Made by a program: the position numbers and the translations under genes. The notes beneath the pieces are model-generated. The model ran no database searches and had not been told where the DNA came from. It saw nothing but the letters and a program-made list of their open reading frames with translations. Shown here one piece after another: positions 25,761-48,471 of a stretch of 64,000 nt of DNA (the first letter of the stretch is position 1; every line of letters begins with the position of its first letter). Where the stretch lies: sequence record OR805294.1, one strand, 5' to 3'.

Positions 25761-25785
25761 AAGCCGTGCTTTTGCGCGGCTTTTT
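25761..25785 (+). terminator. Rho-independent terminator
   Basis: AAGCCGTGC-tttt-GCGCGGCTTTTT. Confidence 0.65.
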
Positions 25786-25801: not shown

Positions 25802-28213
25802 ATGTACATCGATATTTTCGAAGATAAGAAAAATGAAATACTTCTGGTTGCAGAACGATCTGCAGGCAAACGAATATACAAACAATACCCTATAGATCAT
25901 ACGTATTACATATTAGATGCAAACGGACCGTATAAGGATATATTCGGTAATAATGCTAAAGCCATTAAGCCATCTAGCATAAATGAAAAAATGACTCAAA
26001 TGAAAATGCTAGATTTTTCGCAAACGTGCGAAATAGACGTCAGGCCAGAATTTAGATGCCTGGAAGTAAACTATAAGAATGCACCTATGCCAGATTTGCA
26101 TGTTGCATTCTTCGATATCGAGACCGCGTTTGATCAAAAACGCGGTTATGCCGACCCAGCTGATCCTTTTAATCCCATTATATCAATATCTGTATATTTG
26201 CAATGGATGCAGCAAATGGTTTGCTTAGCATTAGCACCAGAGACTATATTGCCAGAAGATGCACAACGCATAGCATCAGAAGTAGGCGAAACAATTATAT
26301 GTAAAAATGAAAAAGAAATGCTAAGTATGTTTATTGACTTAGTAGAAGATGCAGACATTTTATCAGGTTGGAACTCAGAACGTTTCGATATTCCTTATAC
26401 TTTTAACAGAATTGTAAAATTATTAGGTAAGAATGAACTAAGAAAATTATGCCTTTGGAATCTTATGCCCAAGAAGCGCAATATTGAACAAGAAGGCGGC
26501 AGTAGTTTTGTTACATTCGAAACGTTTGGTAGAATACATTTAGATTATCTCCAATTGTATAAAAAATATAATTACGAAGAACGTCATAGTTACTCGTTAG
26601 ATTCTATTTCGGAAATCGAACTAGGTGAACGAAAAGTTCCATACAACGGAACATTAGACAAACTTTATAAATATGATTTTAAAAAGTTTTTAGAATATAA
26701 CATTCAAGATACTCGACTCCTAGATAAGTTAGATAGAAAATTAAAATATATAGATCTAGCTTCCACTATTGCACATAGTAATTGCATTCCTATCCCTACT
26801 GTTATGGGTGCAGTAGCTACAACCGAACAAGCAATTATAATCGAAGCACATAATAACGGCATGGTAGTGCCATCTAGGCAACGTTTTAAAAACAATGATA
26901 CCCTTAAAGCTGCAGGCGGCTGGGTAGCATATCCTAAAGTAGGACTGCATAGAGATATTGGCTCAAGTGACTTAAATTCTCTGTATCCTTCTGTGTTAAG
27001 GGCACTAAACATGAGCCCAGAAACTATTATAGGACAAGTTCGGTTAACACTTACTAACCCTGCAATTGAAGAATGGTGTGCAAAAGGCGGAACAAAACAT
27101 ACATTTGCTGCATGGTGGAACGATAGGTTTACCACTTTAGAAATGGAATATGTGTTAAACAAAGACAGGGGTACTATATTAACGTTAGATATGGCAGACG
27201 GGCGCTCGTTTGAACTGTCAGGTGCCGAAATATACGAATTAGTATTCAACAGTGGTCAGAATTGGCATATCAGTGCTAACGGAACTATATTCACACAAGA
27301 CAGAGCAGGTGTAATTCCGTTACTGCTTACAAGATGGTATGCAGAACGTAAAGGGATGCAGAAAATTGCATCAGATTATAATTCTTTAGATAAAGAACAC
27401 CATAGCGACAAAACTGTATTTTTAGAAGATAAATCAGTATTAGATGGAATATGCGTAGGCGAAGTTGAATTAGCAGACCATTATAATATTAATGATGTAT
27501 ATGTTGCAGCTACATTAAAAAATCTTGTCGAATCAAAAAATTGGCAAGAAGTAGCAATATATATGAAAAAGTATGGACTAGAAGTGTCGTCTGACAATTC
27601 AATTGTTATGTCAGATTCCCATATGCAAAACGAATATTACGAATATTGGGATAAAGCCCAGTTAGTTCGTAAAATTGGATTGAACAGCTTATATGGCGGA
27701 CTACTTAACGAACATTCCAGGTTCTACGATAAAAGACTAGGGCAGAGTACTACACTCACAGGGCGCTGTATCACTAGACATATGGCTTCTAAAACAAACG
27801 AAATGTTCACTGGCATTTATGATCACGAAGGCGATTGTGTAATTTATGGCGATACAGATAGTGTAGATGGATCAACTATCCTAAATACTTCTCTAGGTAA
27901 AATAACTATAGAAGAATTGTTTAATGTGTCTGACAAGCATGTAGTTCATGCAGAAAAAGAATTTGCTTCGAATGAAGATGTTATGGTAATGTCGTGGGAC
28001 AATTCTGCAAAACAACCATATATGGGGCATATAAACTATGTGTACCGCCACGAAGTAGAAAAAGAGTTATTCGAAATAGAAGACAACAACGGAAATAAAG
28101 TTATAGTAACCGAAGATCATTCTATTATGGTTATACGTAATGCAGAACTACTAGAAGTTAAACCCACAGATTTAACAGATAGTGATATAATATTATCTAT
28201 TGTATATGAATAA
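25802..28213 (+). CDS. polB: DNA polymerase family B, N-terminal part, fused to the N-fragment of a split intein
   Basis: ExoI FFDIET, ExoII GWNSERFDIPY, ExoIII YNIQD, motif A SSDLNSLYPS, motif B KIGLNSLYG, motif C YGDTD, then intein sequence. ATG 25802 is preferred. Confidence 0.95.
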   Translation: MYIDIFEDKKNEILLVAERSAGKRIYKQYPIDHTYYILDANGPYKDIFGNNAKAIKPSSINEKMTQMKMLDFSQTCEIDVRPEFRCLEVNYKNAPMPDLHVAFFDIETAFDQKRGYADPADPFNPIISISVYLQWMQQMVCLALAPETILPEDAQRIASEVGETIICKNEKEMLSMFIDLVEDADILSGWNSERFDIPYTFNRIVKLLGKNELRKLCLWNLMPKKRNIEQEGGSSFVTFETFGRIHLDYLQLYKKYNYEERHSYSLDSISEIELGERKVPYNGTLDKLYKYDFKKFLEYNIQDTRLLDKLDRKLKYIDLASTIAHSNCIPIPTVMGAVATTEQAIIIEAHNNGMVVPSRQRFKNNDTLKAAGGWVAYPKVGLHRDIGSSDLNSLYPSVLRALNMSPETIIGQVRLTLTNPAIEEWCAKGGTKHTFAAWWNDRFTTLEMEYVLNKDRGTILTLDMADGRSFELSGAEIYELVFNSGQNWHISANGTIFTQDRAGVIPLLLTRWYAERKGMQKIASDYNSLDKEHHSDKTVFLEDKSVLDGICVGEVELADHYNINDVYVAATLKNLVESKNWQEVAIYMKKYGLEVSSDNSIVMSDSHMQNEYYEYWDKAQLVRKIGLNSLYGGLLNEHSRFYDKRLGQSTTLTGRCITRHMASKTNEMFTGIYDHEGDCVIYGDTDSVDGSTILNTSLGKITIEELFNVSDKHVVHAEKEFASNEDVMVMSWDNSAKQPYMGHINYVYRHEVEKELFEIEDNNGNKVIVTEDHSIMVIRNAELLEVKPTDLTDSDIILSIVYE
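27860..28210 (+). mobile_element. Split intein N-fragment (IntN, 117 aa)
   Basis: Begins SVDGSTIL immediately after YGDTD (block A, Ser1). Block B VTEDHS (TxxH). Ends at stop codon 28211-28213. Confidence 0.92.
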
Positions 28214-29888
28214 AGATTATTATCAGTCATACGCAAAAGAATTAAAAAAGAATAATAAGAAAGAATACAATCGTATTCTTTCTTTGTATGAGCCTGTATT
28301 CGATAAATGGGTTGCATTCAAGTATTACATAGAAGGAATATCGCCGCCTGTATGTAAAGAATGTGGTAATAGAATAACTGTTTCGGCAAAACAAGCAGAA
28401 TATCACACAGAATGCAAATATAATAAACACAAGTATTCATTTGATAAATTTATAAAATGCATAGATGATGACCAATACATATATTGTGTGTGGAATGGAT
28501 ATATTTCAACATCTGACAATATAACATACAGATGCACTAAACACGGCATAATTGTTCAAAAACTTAGTTCTAGACTAAAAGGTCACAAATGCCAAAAATG
28601 TTCAGCTGAGCGTAAAGTAAGTCTAGATAACTTTAATAACTGGAAAACGCAGTGTTCTAAAATACATAATAATTTTTATGATTATTCTGTATCTACTGAT
28701 TTTACATTCTTAACAAAAGATGTATCTATTAAATGTCCAATACATGGAATATTTAAACAAAGAGCAAACGTTCATCAATCGGGTCACGGTTGTAAAAAAT
28801 GCTCGTTCGAAGCCATCGGTCATAGATTATCATATGACACAGATTCTTTTATAGAAAGAAGTAATAACGTTCATAATAATTTTTATGACTATACCAAAAC
28901 TATATACACTAACATTAGAGATAAAGTTATTATAACATGTCCGATACACGGCGACTTTAATCAGATAGCATATTATCATACTGCCGGACACGGTTGTCAG
29001 AAATGCGATTTAGATAAAGTAGCAGAAACTACCTATAGATCTAAGGCAGAAATAGAAATATTTGATTTAGTTAAATCTTATTGCTCAGATACAATTCATT
29101 CATACAATAAATTCGGGTTCGAATTAGACATATATGTTCCTAGTAAAAATCTTGCAATAGAATATAATGGACTTTATTGGCATTCTTCTAAACACATAGA
29201 AACTGATCAAAAGTATAAAACATACCATCTTGATAAAACCACTACATGCGAACAAAATAATATCCAATTATTACACATTTTCGACAACGAATGGCATACT
29301 AAAAAAGATATATGGATCTCGGTGATAAAAAATAAACTAGGTTTATCTAATAAAATATATGCAAGAAAAACAGAAATTAAAGAAGTTAATTTCGATGATG
29401 CAAAGCAATTCGCCGAAACGAATCATTTGCAGGGTCATGCACAATTTCGGTATGCATACGGACTGTATTATTTAGATCAATTAGTTTCTTTATTAACAAT
29501 TGCAAAACCCAGGTTTAATAAAAATGCAAACTGGGAAATAGTAAGATTTTGTAACCTAAATAACACAAGTGTAATAGGTGGGTTTTCTAAATTATTAAAG
29601 GTAGTTTCTTGTAATTTTACAGGCAAGATAGTATCATATGCAAATAGGCGCTGGTCCGCAGGAAACGTTTATGAAAAAAACGGATTTGCCAAAACTTCAA
29701 TAATAGCTCCTGGATTTTATTATACTGACTTCAAAGATACATATAATAGATTATCTTTCTCTAAAGACAAGGCAAAAGTTAAATTAAAAAATTATAATAA
29801 TTCAGTTAGCGTAGTAGAAAATATTTACGCAAACGGATATGGCAGGATTTGGGATTCAGGAAATATTGTTTATACAAAGGATTTATAA
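28206..29888 (+). CDS. Free-standing homing endonuclease (Zn-ribbon repeats, Vsr/EDxHD-like nuclease, C-terminal Mom/GNAT-like domain)
   Basis: Three C-x2-HG...H-x2-G-x2-CxxC repeats. ELDIYVPSKNLAIEYNGLYWHS nuclease motif. Overlaps the Pol-N stop (ATGAATAA). Confidence 0.85.
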   Translation: MNKDYYQSYAKELKKNNKKEYNRILSLYEPVFDKWVAFKYYIEGISPPVCKECGNRITVSAKQAEYHTECKYNKHKYSFDKFIKCIDDDQYIYCVWNGYISTSDNITYRCTKHGIIVQKLSSRLKGHKCQKCSAERKVSLDNFNNWKTQCSKIHNNFYDYSVSTDFTFLTKDVSIKCPIHGIFKQRANVHQSGHGCKKCSFEAIGHRLSYDTDSFIERSNNVHNNFYDYTKTIYTNIRDKVIITCPIHGDFNQIAYYHTAGHGCQKCDLDKVAETTYRSKAEIEIFDLVKSYCSDTIHSYNKFGFELDIYVPSKNLAIEYNGLYWHSSKHIETDQKYKTYHLDKTTTCEQNNIQLLHIFDNEWHTKKDIWISVIKNKLGLSNKIYARKTEIKEVNFDDAKQFAETNHLQGHAQFRYAYGLYYLDQLVSLLTIAKPRFNKNANWEIVRFCNLNNTSVIGGFSKLLKVVSCNFTGKIVSYANRRWSAGNVYEKNGFAKTSIIAPGFYYTDFKDTYNRLSFSKDKAKVKLKNYNNSVSVVENIYANGYGRIWDSGNIVYTKDL

Positions 29889-30143
29889 ATGCATAATCTA
29901 ACAAAACACCTTTTAGGTGTATTTTCTGCAAAAACAGAAGACGAAGAATATAACAGTGCAAAAAGAGCGTTAGAAGAATTAAACAAAAATATAAAAGAAA
30001 GAGATCCTAATAAATTTAATGTGTCTTTAGGAAAGGTATCTAAAGTAACTAATTTAGGAAAAAAGAAACAATATGTATACGATATAGGGATGAAAAATCC
30101 CGATAATCCGTATTTCTTCGGAAATAATATATTAGTTCACAAT
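29889..30143 (+). mobile_element. Split intein C-fragment (IntC, up to 85 aa)
   Basis: Block F VYDI and block G ILVHN, followed by Ser+1 at 30144. Confidence 0.92.
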
Positions 30144-31028
30144 TCTTGCTATTTTACTGCATGGCCTGCAGTAAAAGACCTTGTAGAATCCGGCGAAATG
30201 GAATGGGATAAAGATACTGTCATTAAATTATACGACAACGTTTCGTCGCAAGTAAGTGATACATTTCCAGAATTTTTAAAACAAACATTTAATGTTCCAT
30301 ATAAAAACTCAGAAGGTGTTATTAAGTCAGGTAGGGAAATTGTAGCTACTTCCGGTCTTTTTATTAAAAAGAAACGTTATGCTGCTATGATGTATGATAA
30401 AGAAGGTACTAGATACGACGACGAAAACAGCCCAGGAAAAGTAAAAGCAATGGGTTTAGACTTACGTCGGTCAGATACGCCTAAATTTGTCCAAACATTC
30501 CTCATGGAAATTCTAGTTATGGTGCTAACACATAAAACAGAAGATGAAGTAATAGAATATATTAGAGAATTTAAAAAAGAATTTAATAAAATGAAACCGT
30601 GGGAAAAGGGAATGCCAAAAGGCGTCAACGGTATCAGTACATATGAAGATAAATTAGAAGAACACATGAATAAAAAGTTAGCAGGAAGAGAGTCTAGAAT
30701 CACTGTCCCTGGTCACGTGTCTGCTGCGATGAATTGGAATAAACTAAAGCTTATCAATAAAGACCTACATACTCCTAAAATCTCAGATGGTCAAAAATGT
30801 GTTGTTTGTTATTTAAAAGAAACCGCAGACAATCATTTTACTAGTATAGCATATCCTGTAGATGAATTGCACTTACCAGAATGGTTTACGTCTTTGCCAT
30901 TTGATGAAGATTTAATGAGAGAAAAAGTAGTAGATAACAAAGTTAAGAACCTTTTGGGTATTCTAAAATGGGATTTTAGTAAAACAGAAGAAGCTGCTGC
31001 ACACTTTGATTCGCTGTTTGGTTGGTAA
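29889..31028 (+). CDS. polB: Split intein C-fragment fused to DNA polymerase B C-terminal part
   Basis: YVYDIGM...FFGNNILVHN|SCYF, followed by Pol thumb motifs IKKKRYA, KAMGLDLRRSDTP and VPGHV. Confidence 0.95.
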   Translation: MHNLTKHLLGVFSAKTEDEEYNSAKRALEELNKNIKERDPNKFNVSLGKVSKVTNLGKKKQYVYDIGMKNPDNPYFFGNNILVHNSCYFTAWPAVKDLVESGEMEWDKDTVIKLYDNVSSQVSDTFPEFLKQTFNVPYKNSEGVIKSGREIVATSGLFIKKKRYAAMMYDKEGTRYDDENSPGKVKAMGLDLRRSDTPKFVQTFLMEILVMVLTHKTEDEVIEYIREFKKEFNKMKPWEKGMPKGVNGISTYEDKLEEHMNKKLAGRESRITVPGHVSAAMNWNKLKLINKDLHTPKISDGQKCVVCYLKETADNHFTSIAYPVDELHLPEWFTSLPFDEDLMREKVVDNKVKNLLGILKWDFSKTEEAAAHFDSLFGW

Positions 31029-31108: not shown

Positions 31109-31855
31109 ATGATTGTAGACAATTTAAAGGACGTAGTTCGTAACACTCACGGTTTAGGTTTTATAGATACTGTTAAAATTATCGGTTCTGTAAATGAAAC
31201 TAAATTAGAAGCTATGTCAACTAATAAAACTGTAGTTATGTACGGTTCTTTAAAAAAATCCATTCCGGGGTTAGACGATACTGTAGGTTTAAGTAGAATG
31301 TCTGTACTGAGCGGTATGTTAAATTTCCCACCATATTCGGGAGATGATGCTGAAGTTTCTATTAAGAAACAAGAACGTAACGGTGAAGAAATTCCTGCAG
31401 AAATTGTATTTTCTTCTTCGACGGGTCATAAATCGTCGTACCGGTTTATGGCACGAGATACAGTAGACGAAGTGCTAAAAGTTCCGCCGTTTAGAGGAGT
31501 TGTGTGGGATATAGTTATTCAACCTACTAAACAAGCGATGAAGGATCTTCAATATTTTAGTGCTGTATTGGGTTCTTATGAATCTAACTTTTTAGTTAAA
31601 GTAACAGACGGTGTTTTAGAATTCCACATAGGTACCGGTGCTACTAGTGACCGTACTGTTGTACCATTTGCAAAAGATGTAAAGAGCACATTACGCAATA
31701 ACTGGTCCTGGCCATTACCAGAAGTGTTAGCAATTCTAAAAAACGCAGATAGTGGCAAATGTACTATGTCTATTTCTAGCCAGGGTGCATTAATGATTGA
31801 ACTCGATACTGGGTTAATAGAAGTTCAATATATTCTTCCTGCAAAAAGTGCATAA
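31109..31855 (+). CDS. Putative DNA sliding clamp / processivity factor
   Basis: 248 aa, clamp-sized, directly after polB. Alpha/beta pattern, and the C-terminal ALMIELDTGLIEVQYILPA resembles PCNA/gp45 ends. Confidence 0.6.
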   Translation: MIVDNLKDVVRNTHGLGFIDTVKIIGSVNETKLEAMSTNKTVVMYGSLKKSIPGLDDTVGLSRMSVLSGMLNFPPYSGDDAEVSIKKQERNGEEIPAEIVFSSSTGHKSSYRFMARDTVDEVLKVPPFRGVVWDIVIQPTKQAMKDLQYFSAVLGSYESNFLVKVTDGVLEFHIGTGATSDRTVVPFAKDVKSTLRNNWSWPLPEVLAILKNADSGKCTMSISSQGALMIELDTGLIEVQYILPAKSA

Positions 31856-31858
31856 ATA

Positions 31859-32119
31859 ATGATCTTACCTGCTCGTAAATTAGTTAAATTGCAATACTAT
31901 ATTGTACAGGAATCTTACAATTCTATAGGTAGACCAATAACTACAGTTACTCTTGTATACAGAAAATATATATTTTTTACAAAGAAAGAAAAAATTATAT
32001 TCGAGCGTATTAAGAAAACAGACAATTTGTATTATAAACAAGAATCTGAAAAAGAGTTGTGTGAACAACTAAGTGTATGGGCAAAAAGAACATTAAAAAT
32101 ATATGATATAGGGCAATAA
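31859..32119 (+). CDS. Hypothetical protein
   Basis: 86-aa ORF ending in a terminator. Confidence 0.55.
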   Translation: MILPARKLVKLQYYIVQESYNSIGRPITTVTLVYRKYIFFTKKEKIIFERIKKTDNLYYKQESEKELCEQLSVWAKRTLKIYDIGQ

Positions 32120-32134
32120 TTGCCCTATATTTTT
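32106..32134 (+). terminator. Rho-independent terminator
   Basis: ATATAGGGCAA-taa-TTGCCCTATATTTTT. Confidence 0.75.
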
Positions 32135-32191
32135 CATTTATAAATGAATTAACCTAAATACATATGCACTAAAGAATAATTAAGGAATATA

Positions 32192-33814
32192 ATGAAAAAT
32201 TTATCAAACAGTCAAAAAGATTATGCGATCTATTTGCCTGCAATTAGTGGGTTTTACACAAAACAATTAGACAGTTCTATTAACGATCCGTCTACAAGAA
32301 AAATACCTAGCTTTCCTAATGGATATAATACTCTTAATTTTTTAGATCCATCTAGCGATACTTTCTTTTACGGGTATGGGTTATATTCTGCAGGCCATGC
32401 AGAACTGTCTTTATCTAGAACTGATGCAAAAGAATGGATGATCCAAGCCAGGGACAAAACACAAACAACAGTTATTGCAGATTCGGGTGGTTTCCAGGTA
32501 GCTACTGGTGTAATTAAATTAAACTGGGATGATTTTAAAGGAGCTAGCGGAGATAAAATAAGAAATGAAATTTTAAAATGGTGTGAACATACCGCCGACT
32601 GGTCGATGACACTAGATGTTCCTGCGTTTGCTGCTACTCCTCCGTACAGTTCAAAAACCGGTCTTAATAAATTTGAAGATACATTAGATTATTCTCTTCA
32701 TAATTTACATTATTACATGAAGAACAGAACTCCCGGCGCAACTAAATTCCTTAGTGTATTATCAGGATCAGATGTAGATACATCTAAAATTTGGTACGAC
32801 AACGTAAAAGCATTTAGTGACCCAGCTAAAGTAGTAGAAATGGGATATCCAGCTAGTCATACACTTGAAGGGTATGCATTTGCTGGTATAAACATGAGAA
32901 ATATGTATTGTGCTCTTTCTCGATTCTTAGATCTAATAGATGATAATATTATTTCAGATAAAAACTGGATACACTTTCTTGGATTAGGCAGGACTGATTG
33001 GGCTTGTTTCTTAACATCTATTCAGCGAAATATAAGAAAACATTATAATCCTAATATTAACATAAGTTTTGACGCGGCTTCTCCGTTTGTTTCTGTGGCA
33101 TACGGTCTTGCATATAACTATAATTATTTTAATCCCAAACGGTGGGGATATAATATGGATTCTGCCCCAGACAGCAGAGAGTTTAGTGATAAGGATATTC
33201 CTATGCCGTTTATGAGTCCTATTATGGAAAAATTATCATTAAAAGACATATGTCCATATCACAATGGTTATGGTATAATAAATGGCGTTAAAAATGCAAA
33301 CTTTACAAAAGAAGATGTAGAAACTGCTCTTAAAGAAGGAAAAGATGCAGAATACGTGCCGCCTAGCGCAAATAAAAATGGTAAAGTAGGTAAAACCAGT
33401 TGGGATTCACTTAGTTACTTATTAATAATGAATCACAATGTTTACAACCATATAGCTGCAATCCAAGAATCTAATAGATTAGTCGATATAGAACGGTTGC
33501 GAGTTAAAGTAGATTACCGAGATTGGACTAGAGATAAAAAGAAAGGTACTATAGAAGTAAGTAATCACGTCCCTAGTTCGATTTTATATTTTGACCATTT
33601 CGTAGAAGTATTGCTAGATCCGAGTACTCCTAATAAGCGACAATTACTAGAAGATTATAGACCTATGCTAGACAGCATTAGTTTCGGTAATTATAACTCA
33701 AACTCATTTAATAGTCTTTTTGATGTAGATGCTACTGCAATTGAAGATGAAAATAAGTTTGCAGACATAAACGACGAAAAACTAACTGAATTAGAACAAG
33801 GATTAGACAATTAA
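32192..33814 (+). CDS. TGT-fold transglycosylase, DpdA-like (7-deazaguanine DNA insertion candidate)
   Basis: ADSGGFQ (TGT signature), MTLDVP, IHFLGLG, ISFDAASP (catalytic-Asp region) and NHN. The CxCxxC Zn site is not evident. Confidence 0.78.
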   Translation: MKNLSNSQKDYAIYLPAISGFYTKQLDSSINDPSTRKIPSFPNGYNTLNFLDPSSDTFFYGYGLYSAGHAELSLSRTDAKEWMIQARDKTQTTVIADSGGFQVATGVIKLNWDDFKGASGDKIRNEILKWCEHTADWSMTLDVPAFAATPPYSSKTGLNKFEDTLDYSLHNLHYYMKNRTPGATKFLSVLSGSDVDTSKIWYDNVKAFSDPAKVVEMGYPASHTLEGYAFAGINMRNMYCALSRFLDLIDDNIISDKNWIHFLGLGRTDWACFLTSIQRNIRKHYNPNINISFDAASPFVSVAYGLAYNYNYFNPKRWGYNMDSAPDSREFSDKDIPMPFMSPIMEKLSLKDICPYHNGYGIINGVKNANFTKEDVETALKEGKDAEYVPPSANKNGKVGKTSWDSLSYLLIMNHNVYNHIAAIQESNRLVDIERLRVKVDYRDWTRDKKKGTIEVSNHVPSSILYFDHFVEVLLDPSTPNKRQLLEDYRPMLDSISFGNYNSNSFNSLFDVDATAIEDENKFADINDEKLTELEQGLDN

Positions 33815-45381: not shown

Positions 45382-45735
45382 ATGATCGTCAGCGAGATTA
45401 TATATTCTATTTTCATAGCTGCATTAATAACAGTTATGACTATACTATATATAAGTCTCAGAATAATAACATGTAAGATATTAAATAAGTCATTAAAGAT
45501 TTCAGCTAATGTAATTATATATGGTACCTCTAATATAGAATATGTATATATTCCTGAAATAAAATATAAATTTCTTTCTTTTAAAATAACACATTCTGGT
45601 TTAGTTATGTTTGATAAAGAGTTTGGATTTAGGACACTAAACGATGCCATAAATGCATTAAATATGTATGTAGACACCGATATTATAAAAATAGTATATA
45701 AAAAGGTACCCACATTTTATACTTGGCACGAATAA
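45382..45735 (+). CDS. Membrane-anchored hypothetical protein (tandem paralog 3)
   Basis: ATG 45382 preferred; one N-terminal TM segment. Confidence 0.55.
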   Translation: MIVSEIIYSIFIAALITVMTILYISLRIITCKILNKSLKISANVIIYGTSNIEYVYIPEIKYKFLSFKITHSGLVMFDKEFGFRTLNDAINALNMYVDTDIIKIVYKKVPTFYTWHE

Positions 45736-47231
45736 TGGATAATTTTGATATAGAATTAAAAGAACTCATAAAAAATACAAATCCTAACGCATTAGGAAAT
45801 GTAGTAAAAAGTAAAAAAGAAATATATGAGGAATTAGTTCGTCGAACTAATTCCTTTCTTCGTGACGACGTTTCTGTAACAGAAAGGATTCATATATACT
45901 TAAATCCGGCTGATAATGTTTACTGTAAGTATGATAACAAACGGACACTAAAGCGAAATAAAGATACAAAACAAACCCAATACGGATTTTGCGGAAATAA
46001 AAGTAAATGTAAATGTCATATGGAATGGTCTTTAAAAAATCATCCAGGCATGACACAATCCGGAAAAGAAAGTATGAAAACAAAAAGGATAAAAACTTGG
46101 ATAGAAAAATACGGTGTCGATAATCCATCTAAGTCAAAAGATATTATTGCAAAACAGCAATTAAGTAAAAAACATATAAAGCCAGATCATAGAACTATAA
46201 AGGAATTGGGATATAAAAAAGTAGTAGAACGACTTTCTAACATACTCACTCCTACGTTTAGTATAGACGAGTACGAAGGGTGCTTTAGAAAAAATGTGTA
46301 TGACTGGGTATGCAATGCATGCGGAAATATAGTTATCGGACACGTAGATTATGGGTCTACTCCGAGGTGCAATGTTTGTAATCCTATAACAAAGTCTGCT
46401 GGCGAGAATGAAATATCTAACTATATAGTATCGCTAGGTTTTGATGTGATTAACAATGACCGAACTATATTATCTAACAAAGAATTAGATATAGTAATTA
46501 AAGGCACAAACATAGCAATAGAATATAATGGTTGTTATTGGCATTCTACAAAACACAGAAAAAAATCATATCATGTAGATAAATTTATAGAATGCAGAGA
46601 TAAAGGAATAAAGTTAATACAAATTTTAGATGTAGATTGGATATCAAAACAAGACATAATAAAATCAAGGTTAAAATCTATTTTAGGTTGTAGTGATAGA
46701 ATATATGCAAGGAATACAACCATAAAAGAAATAACATTTAACGAATCTTTAATTTTTTTAGAAGAAACTCACATCCAAGGTTCTTGTCAATCATCTGTAA
46801 GACTAGGTCTATACGACAATGAGAATTTGTTAGTAGCCGTAATGACATTTGGGAAATCTAGATATACAAAAGAGGAATATGAGTTACTTAGGTATGCTAG
46901 CAAAAATACTGTTGTAGGAGGAGCCAGCAAACTTCTTAGATATTTCATAAAAACCTATTCCCCTAAATCTATCATTACATATGCAGACAGGTGCTGGTCA
47001 GATGGAAATTTATATAAACAACTCGGGTTTACAAATGTAACTAAGAATGACAGAAATACAGGATATTGGTATATAAAAGACAACATAAAATATCATAGAT
47101 CTAATTTCATAAAATCTAAGATTTCTAATAAAAATAATTTACATCTAAGCGAATCGGAAATAATGGATAGTTTAGGTTATTTAAAATATTACGATTGCGG
47201 CAATTACAAATATACATTGCAGGTACGCTAG
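45735..47231 (+). CDS. Free-standing homing endonuclease, paralog of 28206..29888
   Basis: ATG 45735 is TAATG-coupled. CNAC...CNVC Zn ribbon, KYGVDNPSK motif, ELDIVIKGTNIAIEYNGCYWHS, IYARNT, TYADRCWSDGNLYKQLGF, YDCGNYKY. Confidence 0.85.
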   Translation: MDNFDIELKELIKNTNPNALGNVVKSKKEIYEELVRRTNSFLRDDVSVTERIHIYLNPADNVYCKYDNKRTLKRNKDTKQTQYGFCGNKSKCKCHMEWSLKNHPGMTQSGKESMKTKRIKTWIEKYGVDNPSKSKDIIAKQQLSKKHIKPDHRTIKELGYKKVVERLSNILTPTFSIDEYEGCFRKNVYDWVCNACGNIVIGHVDYGSTPRCNVCNPITKSAGENEISNYIVSLGFDVINNDRTILSNKELDIVIKGTNIAIEYNGCYWHSTKHRKKSYHVDKFIECRDKGIKLIQILDVDWISKQDIIKSRLKSILGCSDRIYARNTTIKEITFNESLIFLEETHIQGSCQSSVRLGLYDNENLLVAVMTFGKSRYTKEEYELLRYASKNTVVGGASKLLRYFIKTYSPKSIITYADRCWSDGNLYKQLGFTNVTKNDRNTGYWYIKDNIKYHRSNFIKSKISNKNNLHLSESEIMDSLGYLKYYDCGNYKYTLQVR

Positions 47232-47286: not shown

Positions 47287-48471
47287 ATGTCCACTAAAAC
47301 CCTAGAAGAACGCATCATCCGCGCCCGTGTTCAGTTGCTGTTGAACCATCCGTTTTTCGGGACCTTGGCGCTGCGCCTTAAACTAGTCGAGGCGAACGAC
47401 TGGTGCCCTACTGCTGGTACTGATGGACGCCATCTTTATTATAATACCAAGTTCCTCGAAGACTTGGACGATAAGGAACTTATCTTCCTCATCGGTCATG
47501 AGGTAATGCACGTCGTCTACGACCACATGGGGCGGCGCGGCAGCAGAGAGCCTAAACTGTGGAACTGTGCTGCCGACTTTGTTATCAACCTCGAATTGCA
47601 CGATATGAAGATCGGCAAGCTTATCCACCGTCCGGGTACTTGCGAGCCGTGCTTTGATGAAAAGTACCGCGGAATGTCCGCTGACCAGATCTATGAACTA
47701 ATTAAGAAAGATCCGTCACTAAAAGATAAAGATAGCTTCGACGTTCACCTCGAACCCGGCGGCGCCGGGAATGAAGACGGCGATGCTTCTGGCAAATCCG
47801 GTCCTATCCCTATGTCTGCAGATGAGCAAGCTGCTCTTCGGGACGAGATCACTGAAGCTGTTCTTCAGGCTGCTAAAGCTGCTGGTGTCGGCAACACTCC
47901 GGCAGGTGTGCGTCAGATGATCAGTGACATCACTGAACCTAAACTAGATTGGCGCGAATTGCTAAACCAGACTATTCCGTCGCACATTAAATCCGACTAT
48001 ATGTGGACTCGTCCGTCGCGGAAGAGTTGGGGAACTGGTGCGACTCTGCCGGGTCAGATTGTTGATGACAAAATCGATGTTATCCTGGCACTAGACGCCT
48101 CTGGTTCGATTAGCTCTTCTCAGCTAAGGGATTTCTTAGGGGAAGTGTTAGGAATTATGGAACAGTTTAGTGACTTTTCCATACAAGTGCTAACGTTTGA
48201 TACTAGAGTGTATGAATTCCGAAAATATACTCCCGACAATGCAGACGAAATCTATGAGTATCCCCTTAAAGGCGGCGGTGGTACCGATTTTGTGGCTGTG
48301 TTTAACTTCCTTAAAGATACGCTCACTGAACCGCCGCATCAGTTAGTATTCTTCACTGACATGGAAGTGTACGACTACGGCGATCCTAACTATTGCGATA
48401 CTGTGTTTATAAACCACGGTCGCAAAGGTGTAACTGCACCGTTTGGCATCACCATCGACTACGACGAATAA
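47287..48471 (+). CDS. Metallopeptidase-VWA protein (DUF2201-like), MoxR partner
   Basis: PTAGTDG; GHEVMH (HExxH); VILALDASGSIS (MIDAS DxSxS); GGGGTDF; VFFTD. Confidence 0.9.
   Translation: MSTKTLEERIIRARVQLLLNHPFFGTLALRLKLVEANDWCPTAGTDGRHLYYNTKFLEDLDDKELIFLIGHEVMHVVYDHMGRRGSREPKLWNCAADFVINLELHDMKIGKLIHRPGTCEPCFDEKYRGMSADQIYELIKKDPSLKDKDSFDVHLEPGGAGNEDGDASGKSGPIPMSADEQAALRDEITEAVLQAAKAAGVGNTPAGVRQMISDITEPKLDWRELLNQTIPSHIKSDYMWTRPSRKSWGTGATLPGQIVDDKIDVILALDASGSISSSQLRDFLGEVLGIMEQFSDFSIQVLTFDTRVYEFRKYTPDNADEIYEYPLKGGGGTDFVAVFNFLKDTLTEPPHQLVFFTDMEVYDYGDPNYCDTVFINHGRKGVTAPFGITIDYDE

Follow-up and report, generated by a model that had tools for sequence, protein, structure and literature searches.

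How does a phage obtain an intact replicase from a DNA polymerase gene that is broken within catalytic motif C? This question is raised by a window of 64,000 nucleotides (nt) from record OR805294.1 (Pseudomonas phage Ettore), in which a family B DNA polymerase gene (polB) is carried as two genes, Pol-N and Pol-C, with a free-standing endonuclease gene between them. The facing ends of Pol-N and Pol-C encode the N- and C-terminal fragments (IntN and IntC) of a split intein, and comparison with relatives makes it very probable that these fragments constitute a functional trans-splicing intein.

A fractured polymerase gene

The 5227-base polB region is 100% identical to positions 87802-93028 of the Ettore record OR805294.1. 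Ettore is a PA5oct-like Pseudomonas jumbo phage (genus Wroclawvirus, family Arenbergviridae), and the region shares 98.4 to 99.1% nucleotide identity with ten further PA5oct-like jumbo phage records. Its features are as follows (window coordinates; aa, amino acids).

25761 to 25782, + strand: intrinsic-terminator-like hairpin with a T-run, immediately 5' of Pol-N
25802 to 28213, + strand: Pol-N gene, 803 aa and a stop codon; exonuclease domain, motifs A and B and, from motif C, YGDTD, with IntN fused behind it
25802 to 27859, + strand: N-extein, 686 aa, C-terminal end ...VIYGDTD
27860 to 28210, + strand: IntN, 117 aa, no Cys, net charge -14
28206 to 29888, + strand: free-standing homing endonuclease gene, Hef-like, 560 aa from ATG (562 aa from TTG at 28200)
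29889 to 31028, + strand: Pol-C gene, 379 aa and a stop codon; the remaining palm and the thumb domain, fused behind IntC
29889 to 30143, + strand: whole IntC, 85 aa, no Cys, C-terminal end ILVHN / SCYF
29889 to 30020, + strand: IntC leader, 44 aa, 8 D/E versus 8 K/R (net charge zero), one predicted helix (residues 19-37)
30021 to 30143, + strand: IntC core, 41 aa, basic (6 K versus 2 D)
30144 to 31025, + strand: C-extein, 294 aa, beginning SCYFTAWP, with Ser+1 at 30144-30146

Pol-N matches phrog_262 (E = 1e-142), PF03104 and PF00136 (family B DNA polymerase) and is annotated as a DNA polymerase in Ettore, PA5oct and MIJ3. Pol-C matches phrog_1918 (E = 8e-52), and the phrog matches of both halves identify the exteins as a T4 gp43-like family B polymerase. 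In the open reading frame (ORF) list, Pol-N reads ...VIYGDTD / SVDGSTIL...VTEDHS...IVYE-stop. The endonuclease ATG and the Pol-N stop lie in an overlap of 8 nt, and the Pol-C ATG, preceded by a Shine-Dalgarno-like AAGGA, directly abuts the endonuclease stop. This ORF list reproduces the three genes at the coordinates given in the preliminary description, whose central claim of a split polB gene with a free-standing homing endonuclease gene between intein halves is borne out at the sequence level. The order Pol-N, endonuclease, Pol-C is kept in all 11 of the Wroclawvirus genomes compared (11/11), in whose records the genes are labelled DNA polymerase, homing endonuclease and DNA polymerase, or hypothetical throughout. 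In the MIJ3 record, the Pol-C gene carries the gene name "ATPase."

Between the terminator-like hairpin upstream of Pol-N and the end of Pol-C there is no convincing + strand terminator; the sole + strand match, at 29906-29920 within Pol-C, is a weak hairpin of 6 bp. This distribution suggests a single transcript, and Pol-N, the endonuclease gene and Pol-C are probably co-transcribed.

The two fragments make up one complete intein

The Pfam profile Intein_splicing (PF14890, 155 positions) matches IntN over positions 2-93 (E = 2.9e-11, passing the curated threshold) and IntC over positions 100-155 (E = 3e-6, short of that threshold); because the matched stretches are complementary, the fragments appear as two parts of one domain. 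IntN is also matched by TIGR01445 (intein_Nterm, E = 1e-8) and, in a PDB sequence search, by 9hth (E = 8e-12), a structure of the fused Aes123 PolB1 intein, identified as such by its sequence although its label is DNA-directed DNA polymerase. IntC matches 8cpo and 8cpn (PolB16, E = 6e-3). For both fragments, then, the top PDB sequence matches are crystal structures of fused Cys-less PolB inteins.

We aligned IntN (alignment A1) and IntC (alignment A2) from Ettore, Aes123, Tenacibaculum phage PTm1, Campylobacter phage CP21 and Salicola phage SCTP-2, and IntC from 18 sequences (alignment A4). These alignments locate the residues expected of a class 1 intein.

27860-27862, + strand: Ser1, the block A nucleophile, directly after YGDTD; column invariant across the five homologues
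28046-28051, + strand: NX motif Arg63-His64 of IntN; His invariant, preceding residue Arg or Lys
28109-28120, + strand: block B (N3) Thr84-Glu85-Asp86-His87 of IntN; Thr84, Asp86 and His87 invariant in A1
30081-30083, + strand: block F Asp65 of IntC; invariant in A2 and across the 18 sequences of A4
30138-30143, + strand: block G His84-Asn85 of IntC; invariant across the 18 sequences of A4, as is Ser+1

Asn85 and Ser+1 are likewise invariant in A2, in which His84 is Lys in SCTP-2. Pasch et al. 2023 (PMC10189870) showed that the NX motif (Arg/Lys-His) is a specific feature of Ser1 inteins and that it matters for their activity. As judged by alignment, all class 1 splicing residues are present in the Ettore intein, and none of its residues is Cys (0/202), as had been proposed for a Cys-free Ser1/Ser+1 split intein at the YGDTD/S site of motif C. 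That this is an established polymerase intein site also holds, since it is used by Aes123, PTm1, CP21 and PolB16; the insertion point in Aes123, PTm1 and CP21 (x-DTD / S...HN / S) is the same as in Ettore.

The contiguous mini-intein of SCTP-2 can be aligned over the full length of IntN plus the IntC core, with no segment missing. Because SCTP-2 bridges the end of IntN to the start of the IntC core without a gap, the break falls at the canonical endonuclease insertion point, between blocks N4 and C2, and by this comparison the two pieces together make up one complete HINT domain. In an AlphaFold model of Pol-C alone, the thumb domain is confident, and residues 1-88 have a predicted local distance difference test (pLDDT) score of 35-54 except for the helix at 19-37; low confidence in IntC is what would be expected of a split-intein fragment that has yet to meet its partner.

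The predicted splice junction can be compared with an intein-free allele. The closest intein-free polymerase, that of Agrobacterium phage Atu_ph07 (C-extein 44% identical), reads IAYNDTDSAYFTAYN uninterrupted across the junction and is collinear with the predicted Ettore splice product YGDTDSCYFTAWP. The comparison with relatives that had been proposed as a check therefore agrees with restoration of motif C as YGDTDSCYF on splicing.

The 44-aa leader of IntC is missing in Aes123, PTm1 and CP21 and is found, poorly conserved, in about half of the close metagenomic relatives. We considered a shorter IntC starting from an in-frame GTG at Val45 and rejected it, because no Shine-Dalgarno-like sequence lies at a workable distance. 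In a relative, the metagenomic contig L011, a GAGGGA precedes an equally long leader, which supports the long IntC start.

The intein is conserved like the polymerase

To assess whether the intein is maintained, we compared substitutions in the intein halves, the exteins and the endonuclease. Between Ettore and MIJ3, IntN has 9 nt but 0 aa differences, the exteins 44 and 1, and the endonuclease 19 and 4; the corresponding figures for Ettore and PA5oct are 5 and 1, 43 and 2, and 18 and 7. A more distant comparison is offered by L011, a 51-kb gut metagenome contig that is syntenic with the Ettore locus and carries, in order, genes for a cytidylyltransferase, a DsbA-like protein, Pol-N (804 aa), the endonuclease (560 aa) and Pol-C (371 aa), followed by the same downstream genes. 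Identity to L011 is 57% for IntN, 58.5% for the IntC core, 54% for the exteins, 43% for the endonuclease and 26% for the IntC leader. By these comparisons, purifying selection acts on the intein halves as strongly as on the polymerase. An intein conserved like its exteins is maintained by selection, as would be expected if the polymerase needs splicing.

Proposed mechanism

We propose that the locus is a fractured polB gene, encoding in tandem Pol-N fused to IntN, a selfish endonuclease, and IntC fused to Pol-C. Once translated, the acidic IntN and the basic IntC core would associate electrostatically and fold as one HINT domain, which would carry out class 1 protein trans-splicing through oxyester intermediates. 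Ser1 would undergo an N-O acyl shift, assisted by His64 of the NX motif and by Thr84 and His87 of block B; Ser+1 would perform the trans-esterification, and Asn85 would cyclize with the help of His84. The product would be a contiguous polymerase with a restored motif C. The Hef-like EDxHD endonuclease would be a mobile passenger, which most likely spread by cutting alleles of this locus that lack it.

Several observations weigh against efficient or obligatory splicing. Our literature search found no biochemical or proteomic report on the Ettore-type intein, and its unusual 44-aa leader may bear on fragment association. Wild-type Aes123 splices only about 30% in vitro since its IntN aggregates, and splicing efficiency therefore cannot be assumed for Ettore. 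Relatives also have polymerases that are split at other points without inteins: the Atu_ph07 polB (L008:1416-4385) is divided elsewhere into two adjacent genes, with neither intein nor endonuclease, and the Aes123 polymerase is divided into gp43A and gp43B. Covalent joining is thus not strictly proven necessary. The existence of such two-subunit family B enzymes, together with the lack of a splicing report in the literature search, leaves some room for the idea that the intein halves are dead for splicing and act as a charge-driven, high-affinity dimerization handle of a non-covalent two-subunit polymerase. We consider this unlikely. Residues needed only for the chemistry (Ser1, His64, Thr84/His87, Asp65, His84-Asn85 and Ser+1) vary little or not at all among relatives of about 50% identity, and the break lies inside catalytic motif C, where an unspliced insert of about 200 aa would occupy the active site.

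Nor is a decaying relic, with replication carried out by another polymerase, an attractive account, and we judge it very improbable: the genes are free of stops and frameshifts in 11/11 genomes, motifs A, B and C are intact, and substitutions in the exteins and intein are nearly all synonymous (43-44 nt versus 1-2 aa in the exteins). Pol I-like proteins are found in related jumbo phages, which would suit a relic, and the polymerase genes considered were those of the polB locus within a 288-kb genome. We give next to no credence to removal of the interruption as RNA (a group I or group II intron carrying an endonuclease ORF) or to a contiguous gene that was misassembled or wrongly sequenced. 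Group I introns do often harbor phage endonuclease genes, and intron-encoded EDxHD enzymes exist, for example I-Bth0305I. A group I or II intron was nevertheless rejected because an Rfam scan of 27500-30500 at E <= 1 returned no intron family and only two chance-level matches, and the flanking sequence codes in frame for intein halves that have a stop, a start and a Shine-Dalgarno-like sequence of their own. Because 11 phages sequenced independently of one another share this architecture with divergent contigs from metagenomes, an artefact is excluded, and the contiguous gene that had been named as a possible refutation finds no support. Functional protein trans-splicing remains the reading that we favor.

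Relation to known split inteins

The split-intein polB of Ettore is already known: the same locus was published in 2019 for Pseudomonas phage vB_PaeM_MIJ3, in which a split PolB intein was described (Imam et al. 2019, Front Microbiol, PMC6892783). The two loci share 98.6% nucleotide identity over all 5227 bases, with 100% aa identity in IntN, IntC and the C-extein, and the sequences published for blocks A, N2, B, N4, F and G recur in Ettore. There is no biological difference between the MIJ3 account and the Ettore locus. The MIJ3 paper labels the endonuclease "HNH," reports no splicing assay and already remarks on the similarity to the SCTP-2 intein; it is silent on the absence of Cys, the charge polarity, the IntC leader and the relation to Aes123. 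In the omics paper on PA5oct, the split polymerase and the endonuclease go unmentioned. To this known locus we add the domain make-up of the endonuclease, the reversed charge polarity, the IntC leader and the purifying selection on the intein halves.

The preliminary description had placed the locus among fractured phage genes with split inteins and free-standing endonucleases, and it does match the layout of gp41-1, NrdJ-1, IMPDH-1 and others reported by Dassa et al. 2009 (PMC2677866): N-host-IntN, a free-standing endonuclease and IntC-host-C, with the split between blocks N4 and C2, reading frames that overlap or abut, negative IntN and positive IntC charges, and an endonuclease with a Vsr-like nuclease core. 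Unlike the Ettore intein, those inteins use Cys, and their Vsr-like endonucleases have NUMOD and helix-turn-helix DNA-binding regions in place of zinc ribbons and a GNAT-like domain.

A closer relative is the PolB1 split intein of Aes123, from which the engineered CL and CLm derivatives were obtained (Bhagawati 2019; Humberg 2025, PMC11923092; PDB 9hth). It shares with Ettore the host gene, the insertion site (Y-x-DTD/S...HN/S), Ser1 and Ser+1, the lack of Cys, a split at the endonuclease position and an endonuclease gene between the halves, and its IntN is about 34% identical. These correspondences indicate that the Ettore intein is allelic with the cysteine-less PolB motif C inteins of the Aes123 PolB1 type. 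Unlike in Ettore, the Aes123 IntC is 39 aa with no leader, its endonuclease is a 353-aa phrog_22677 "VSR" protein rather than a 560-aa phrog_559 enzyme, and its polymerase has an additional split into gp43A and gp43B. Among homologues, in vitro trans-splicing has been shown for Aes123 PolB1, PolB16 and CP21 PolB1, with varying efficiency (PMC11923092, PMC12707363, PMC10189870); Aes123 PolB1, CP21 PolB1, LCGC14 PolB2 and PolB16 have been characterized biochemically as rare cysteine-less split inteins. The PolB16 OarG intein (PMC10189870) shares the GDTD/S site and the NX histidine with Ettore and is atypically split after 15 residues.

The SCTP-2 PolB mini-intein (L006:4426-5300) is a homologous Ser1 intein in motif C (38% identity), unsplit and contiguous. 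It lies two residues earlier, as YGD / S...KN / TDS, with Thr+1 and no penultimate His, and this earlier register recurs in 26 of the best 150 IntN relatives. Two registers among homologous inteins mean that one intein family occupies both positions in motif C.

How uncommon is such an intein? An exhaustive search recovered IntN relatives in 757 clusters (50% identity, E <= 1e-3). Among the best 150 of these, 122 end at IntN (122/150) and hence are split, and 87/150 have DTD/S before the intein. The earlier statement that a Cys-free Ser1/Ser+1 split intein is uncommon therefore stands for characterized examples, which are few, but not for natural occurrence, as the family is abundant in metagenomes.

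Charge polarity differs between sub-clades of the intein

Acidic IntN and basic IntC fragments had been noted from hand counts, and these prove exact: in IntN, D/E outnumber K/R by 23 to 9 (net charge -14), and there are 6 K and 2 D over the last 41 aa of IntC. IntC is +4 overall and +5 over the first 20 residues of its core, so the proposed charge complementarity of the acidic IntN with the basic IntC core also holds. IntN is negative (-10 to -21) and the start of the IntC core positive (+1 to +5) in Ettore and at loci L011, L015, L016 and L017. In contrast, IntN is positive (+4 to +9) and IntC negative (-8 to -14) in Aes123 (+8 and -11), PTm1, CP21 and VPALA. Within one intein allele, the sequences thus indicate that charge polarity has flipped between sub-clades. 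This opposite polarity predicts that the Ettore intein would be orthogonal to Aes123-derived tools.

A Hef-like endonuclease with a Vsr-like nuclease core

The endonuclease matches phrog_559 (E = 1.6e-118) and phrog_3339 and is annotated "Hef-like" in PA5oct; its family is very large (>5,200 phage proteins at E <= 1e-10). From a family alignment of 44 sequences we obtained a structure model (pLDDT 92) and a family profile, which together delimit three regions.

28338 to 29030, + strand: zinc-ribbon region, residues ~45-275; a CxxC element and three repeated C-x2-H...C-x2-C modules, DUF723-like (PF05265)
29031 to 29339, + strand: EDxHD (Vsr-like) nuclease core, residues ~276-378; Glu282, Asp308, Glu319 and His326 invariant in the 44 sequences
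29343 to 29885, + strand: GNAT-like domain, residues ~380-560; model pLDDT 92

The zinc-ribbon region presumably binds DNA; its C/H columns are invariant in the 44-sequence alignment. The single sequence gave no match in a PDB search, and Foldseek on the whole model returned only the GNAT-like domain, without the Vsr core. The family profile alone reached 3r3p, the catalytic domain of I-Bth0305I (E = 1.8e-5), with the Glu, Asp, Glu and His columns aligned. Homologues, and a paralogue in the window, match PF18741 and PF03852. By its nuclease core, the enzyme can be assigned to the EDxHD (Vsr-like) homing endonucleases, with cleavage activity predicted; Taylor et al. 2011 (PMC3239194) placed Hef-type enzymes, including T4-like phage Hef, in this family. 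The "HNH" label of MIJ3 and phrog_559 is wrong: Pfam scans gave no HNH match and the HNH catalytic motif was not found, the only nuclease similarity is to the Vsr/EDxHD fold, and the Cys/His repeats are zinc ribbons. Like I-Bth0305I, the Ettore enzyme has a nuclease core of the EDxHD type. Unlike it, the core is central, with zinc ribbons on one side and the GNAT-like domain on the other; I-Bth0305I, encoded in an intron and 266 aa long, has NUMODs at its N terminus and its nuclease domain at the C terminus.

In Foldseek searches, phage Mu Mom (8bv8, E = 4e-6) heads the PDB matches of the GNAT-like domain, ahead of many GNAT acetyltransferases; the family profile matches 2bsw at E = 0.05. About 15 residues of the domain are invariant across the 44 homologues, including Gly458-Gly459 at a helix start. 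Our literature search found no paper linking Hef-type endonucleases to a GNAT/Mom-like domain. On a less probable reading, this strongly conserved domain could be an active module that modifies nucleic acids or binds a cofactor, instead of serving passively in DNA binding; the Ettore enzyme would then combine homing with a modification activity of its own.

A weak RNA hairpin (28196-28240, + strand; whole 111-nt fold -13.3 kcal/mol, z = -2.0, marginal) encloses the start codon of the endonuclease gene and is reminiscent of those that Dassa 2009 reported upstream of endonuclease genes in fractured loci. We do not claim that it occludes the start, since the z score is marginal.

A second free-standing endonuclease gene, at 45723-47231 (+ strand), encodes 502 aa that are 37% identical to residues 272-557 of the polB-locus enzyme and give weak Vsr and MTES_1575 matches. 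By tblastn, the Ettore genome has five places similar to the polB-locus endonuclease.

The endonuclease has turned over at a stable split site

Among the loci compared, the 560-aa Hef-like phrog_559 enzyme occupies this site only in the Ettore lineage and L011. A phrog_22677 "VSR" endonuclease of 261-366 aa lies between the halves at seven others (Aes123, CP21, PTm1, VPALA, L015, L016 and L017), and at the metagenomic locus L013 (5892-6001) the intein halves are separated by a 108-nt gap only, with no endonuclease. A different endonuclease, or none, at the same split site indicates that the endonuclease turned over while the split intein stayed. We considered whether the 44-aa IntC leader is tied to the Hef-like endonuclease and found that it is not, as L015 and L016 have the leader with a phrog_22677 endonuclease.

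Neighboring genes

Downstream of Pol-C, three ORFs (31109-33814, + strand; 248, 86 and 540 aa) keep their order and similar sizes in L011; those of 248 and 540 aa have no Pfam match. A QueE-like radical SAM gene lies ~3 kb beyond them. ETTORE_0139 (47287-48471, + strand), annotated "homing endonuclease," encodes a DUF2201 metallopeptidase and VWA-like protein (PF13203, E = 6e-43; PF09967), and its label appears to be an annotation error on these domain matches. It neighbors the 502-aa endonuclease gene, ~1.3 kb upstream of which lies an ATPase gene.

Implications

Several annotations should be corrected: the endonuclease is not "HNH," the three genes are merely hypothetical in several relatives, and the MIJ3 Pol-C is named "ATPase." The practical interest of the locus is in protein engineering, for which few cysteine-less split inteins are characterized and orthogonal pairs are actively sought (PMC12707363). 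With no Cys and a charge polarity opposite to that of Aes123-derived tools, the Ettore intein is a candidate tool with predicted orthogonality. For a large lytic phage, the biology is unremarkable: a selfish intein and endonuclease occupy the most conserved motif of the replicase, and phage replication presumably depends on protein trans-splicing.

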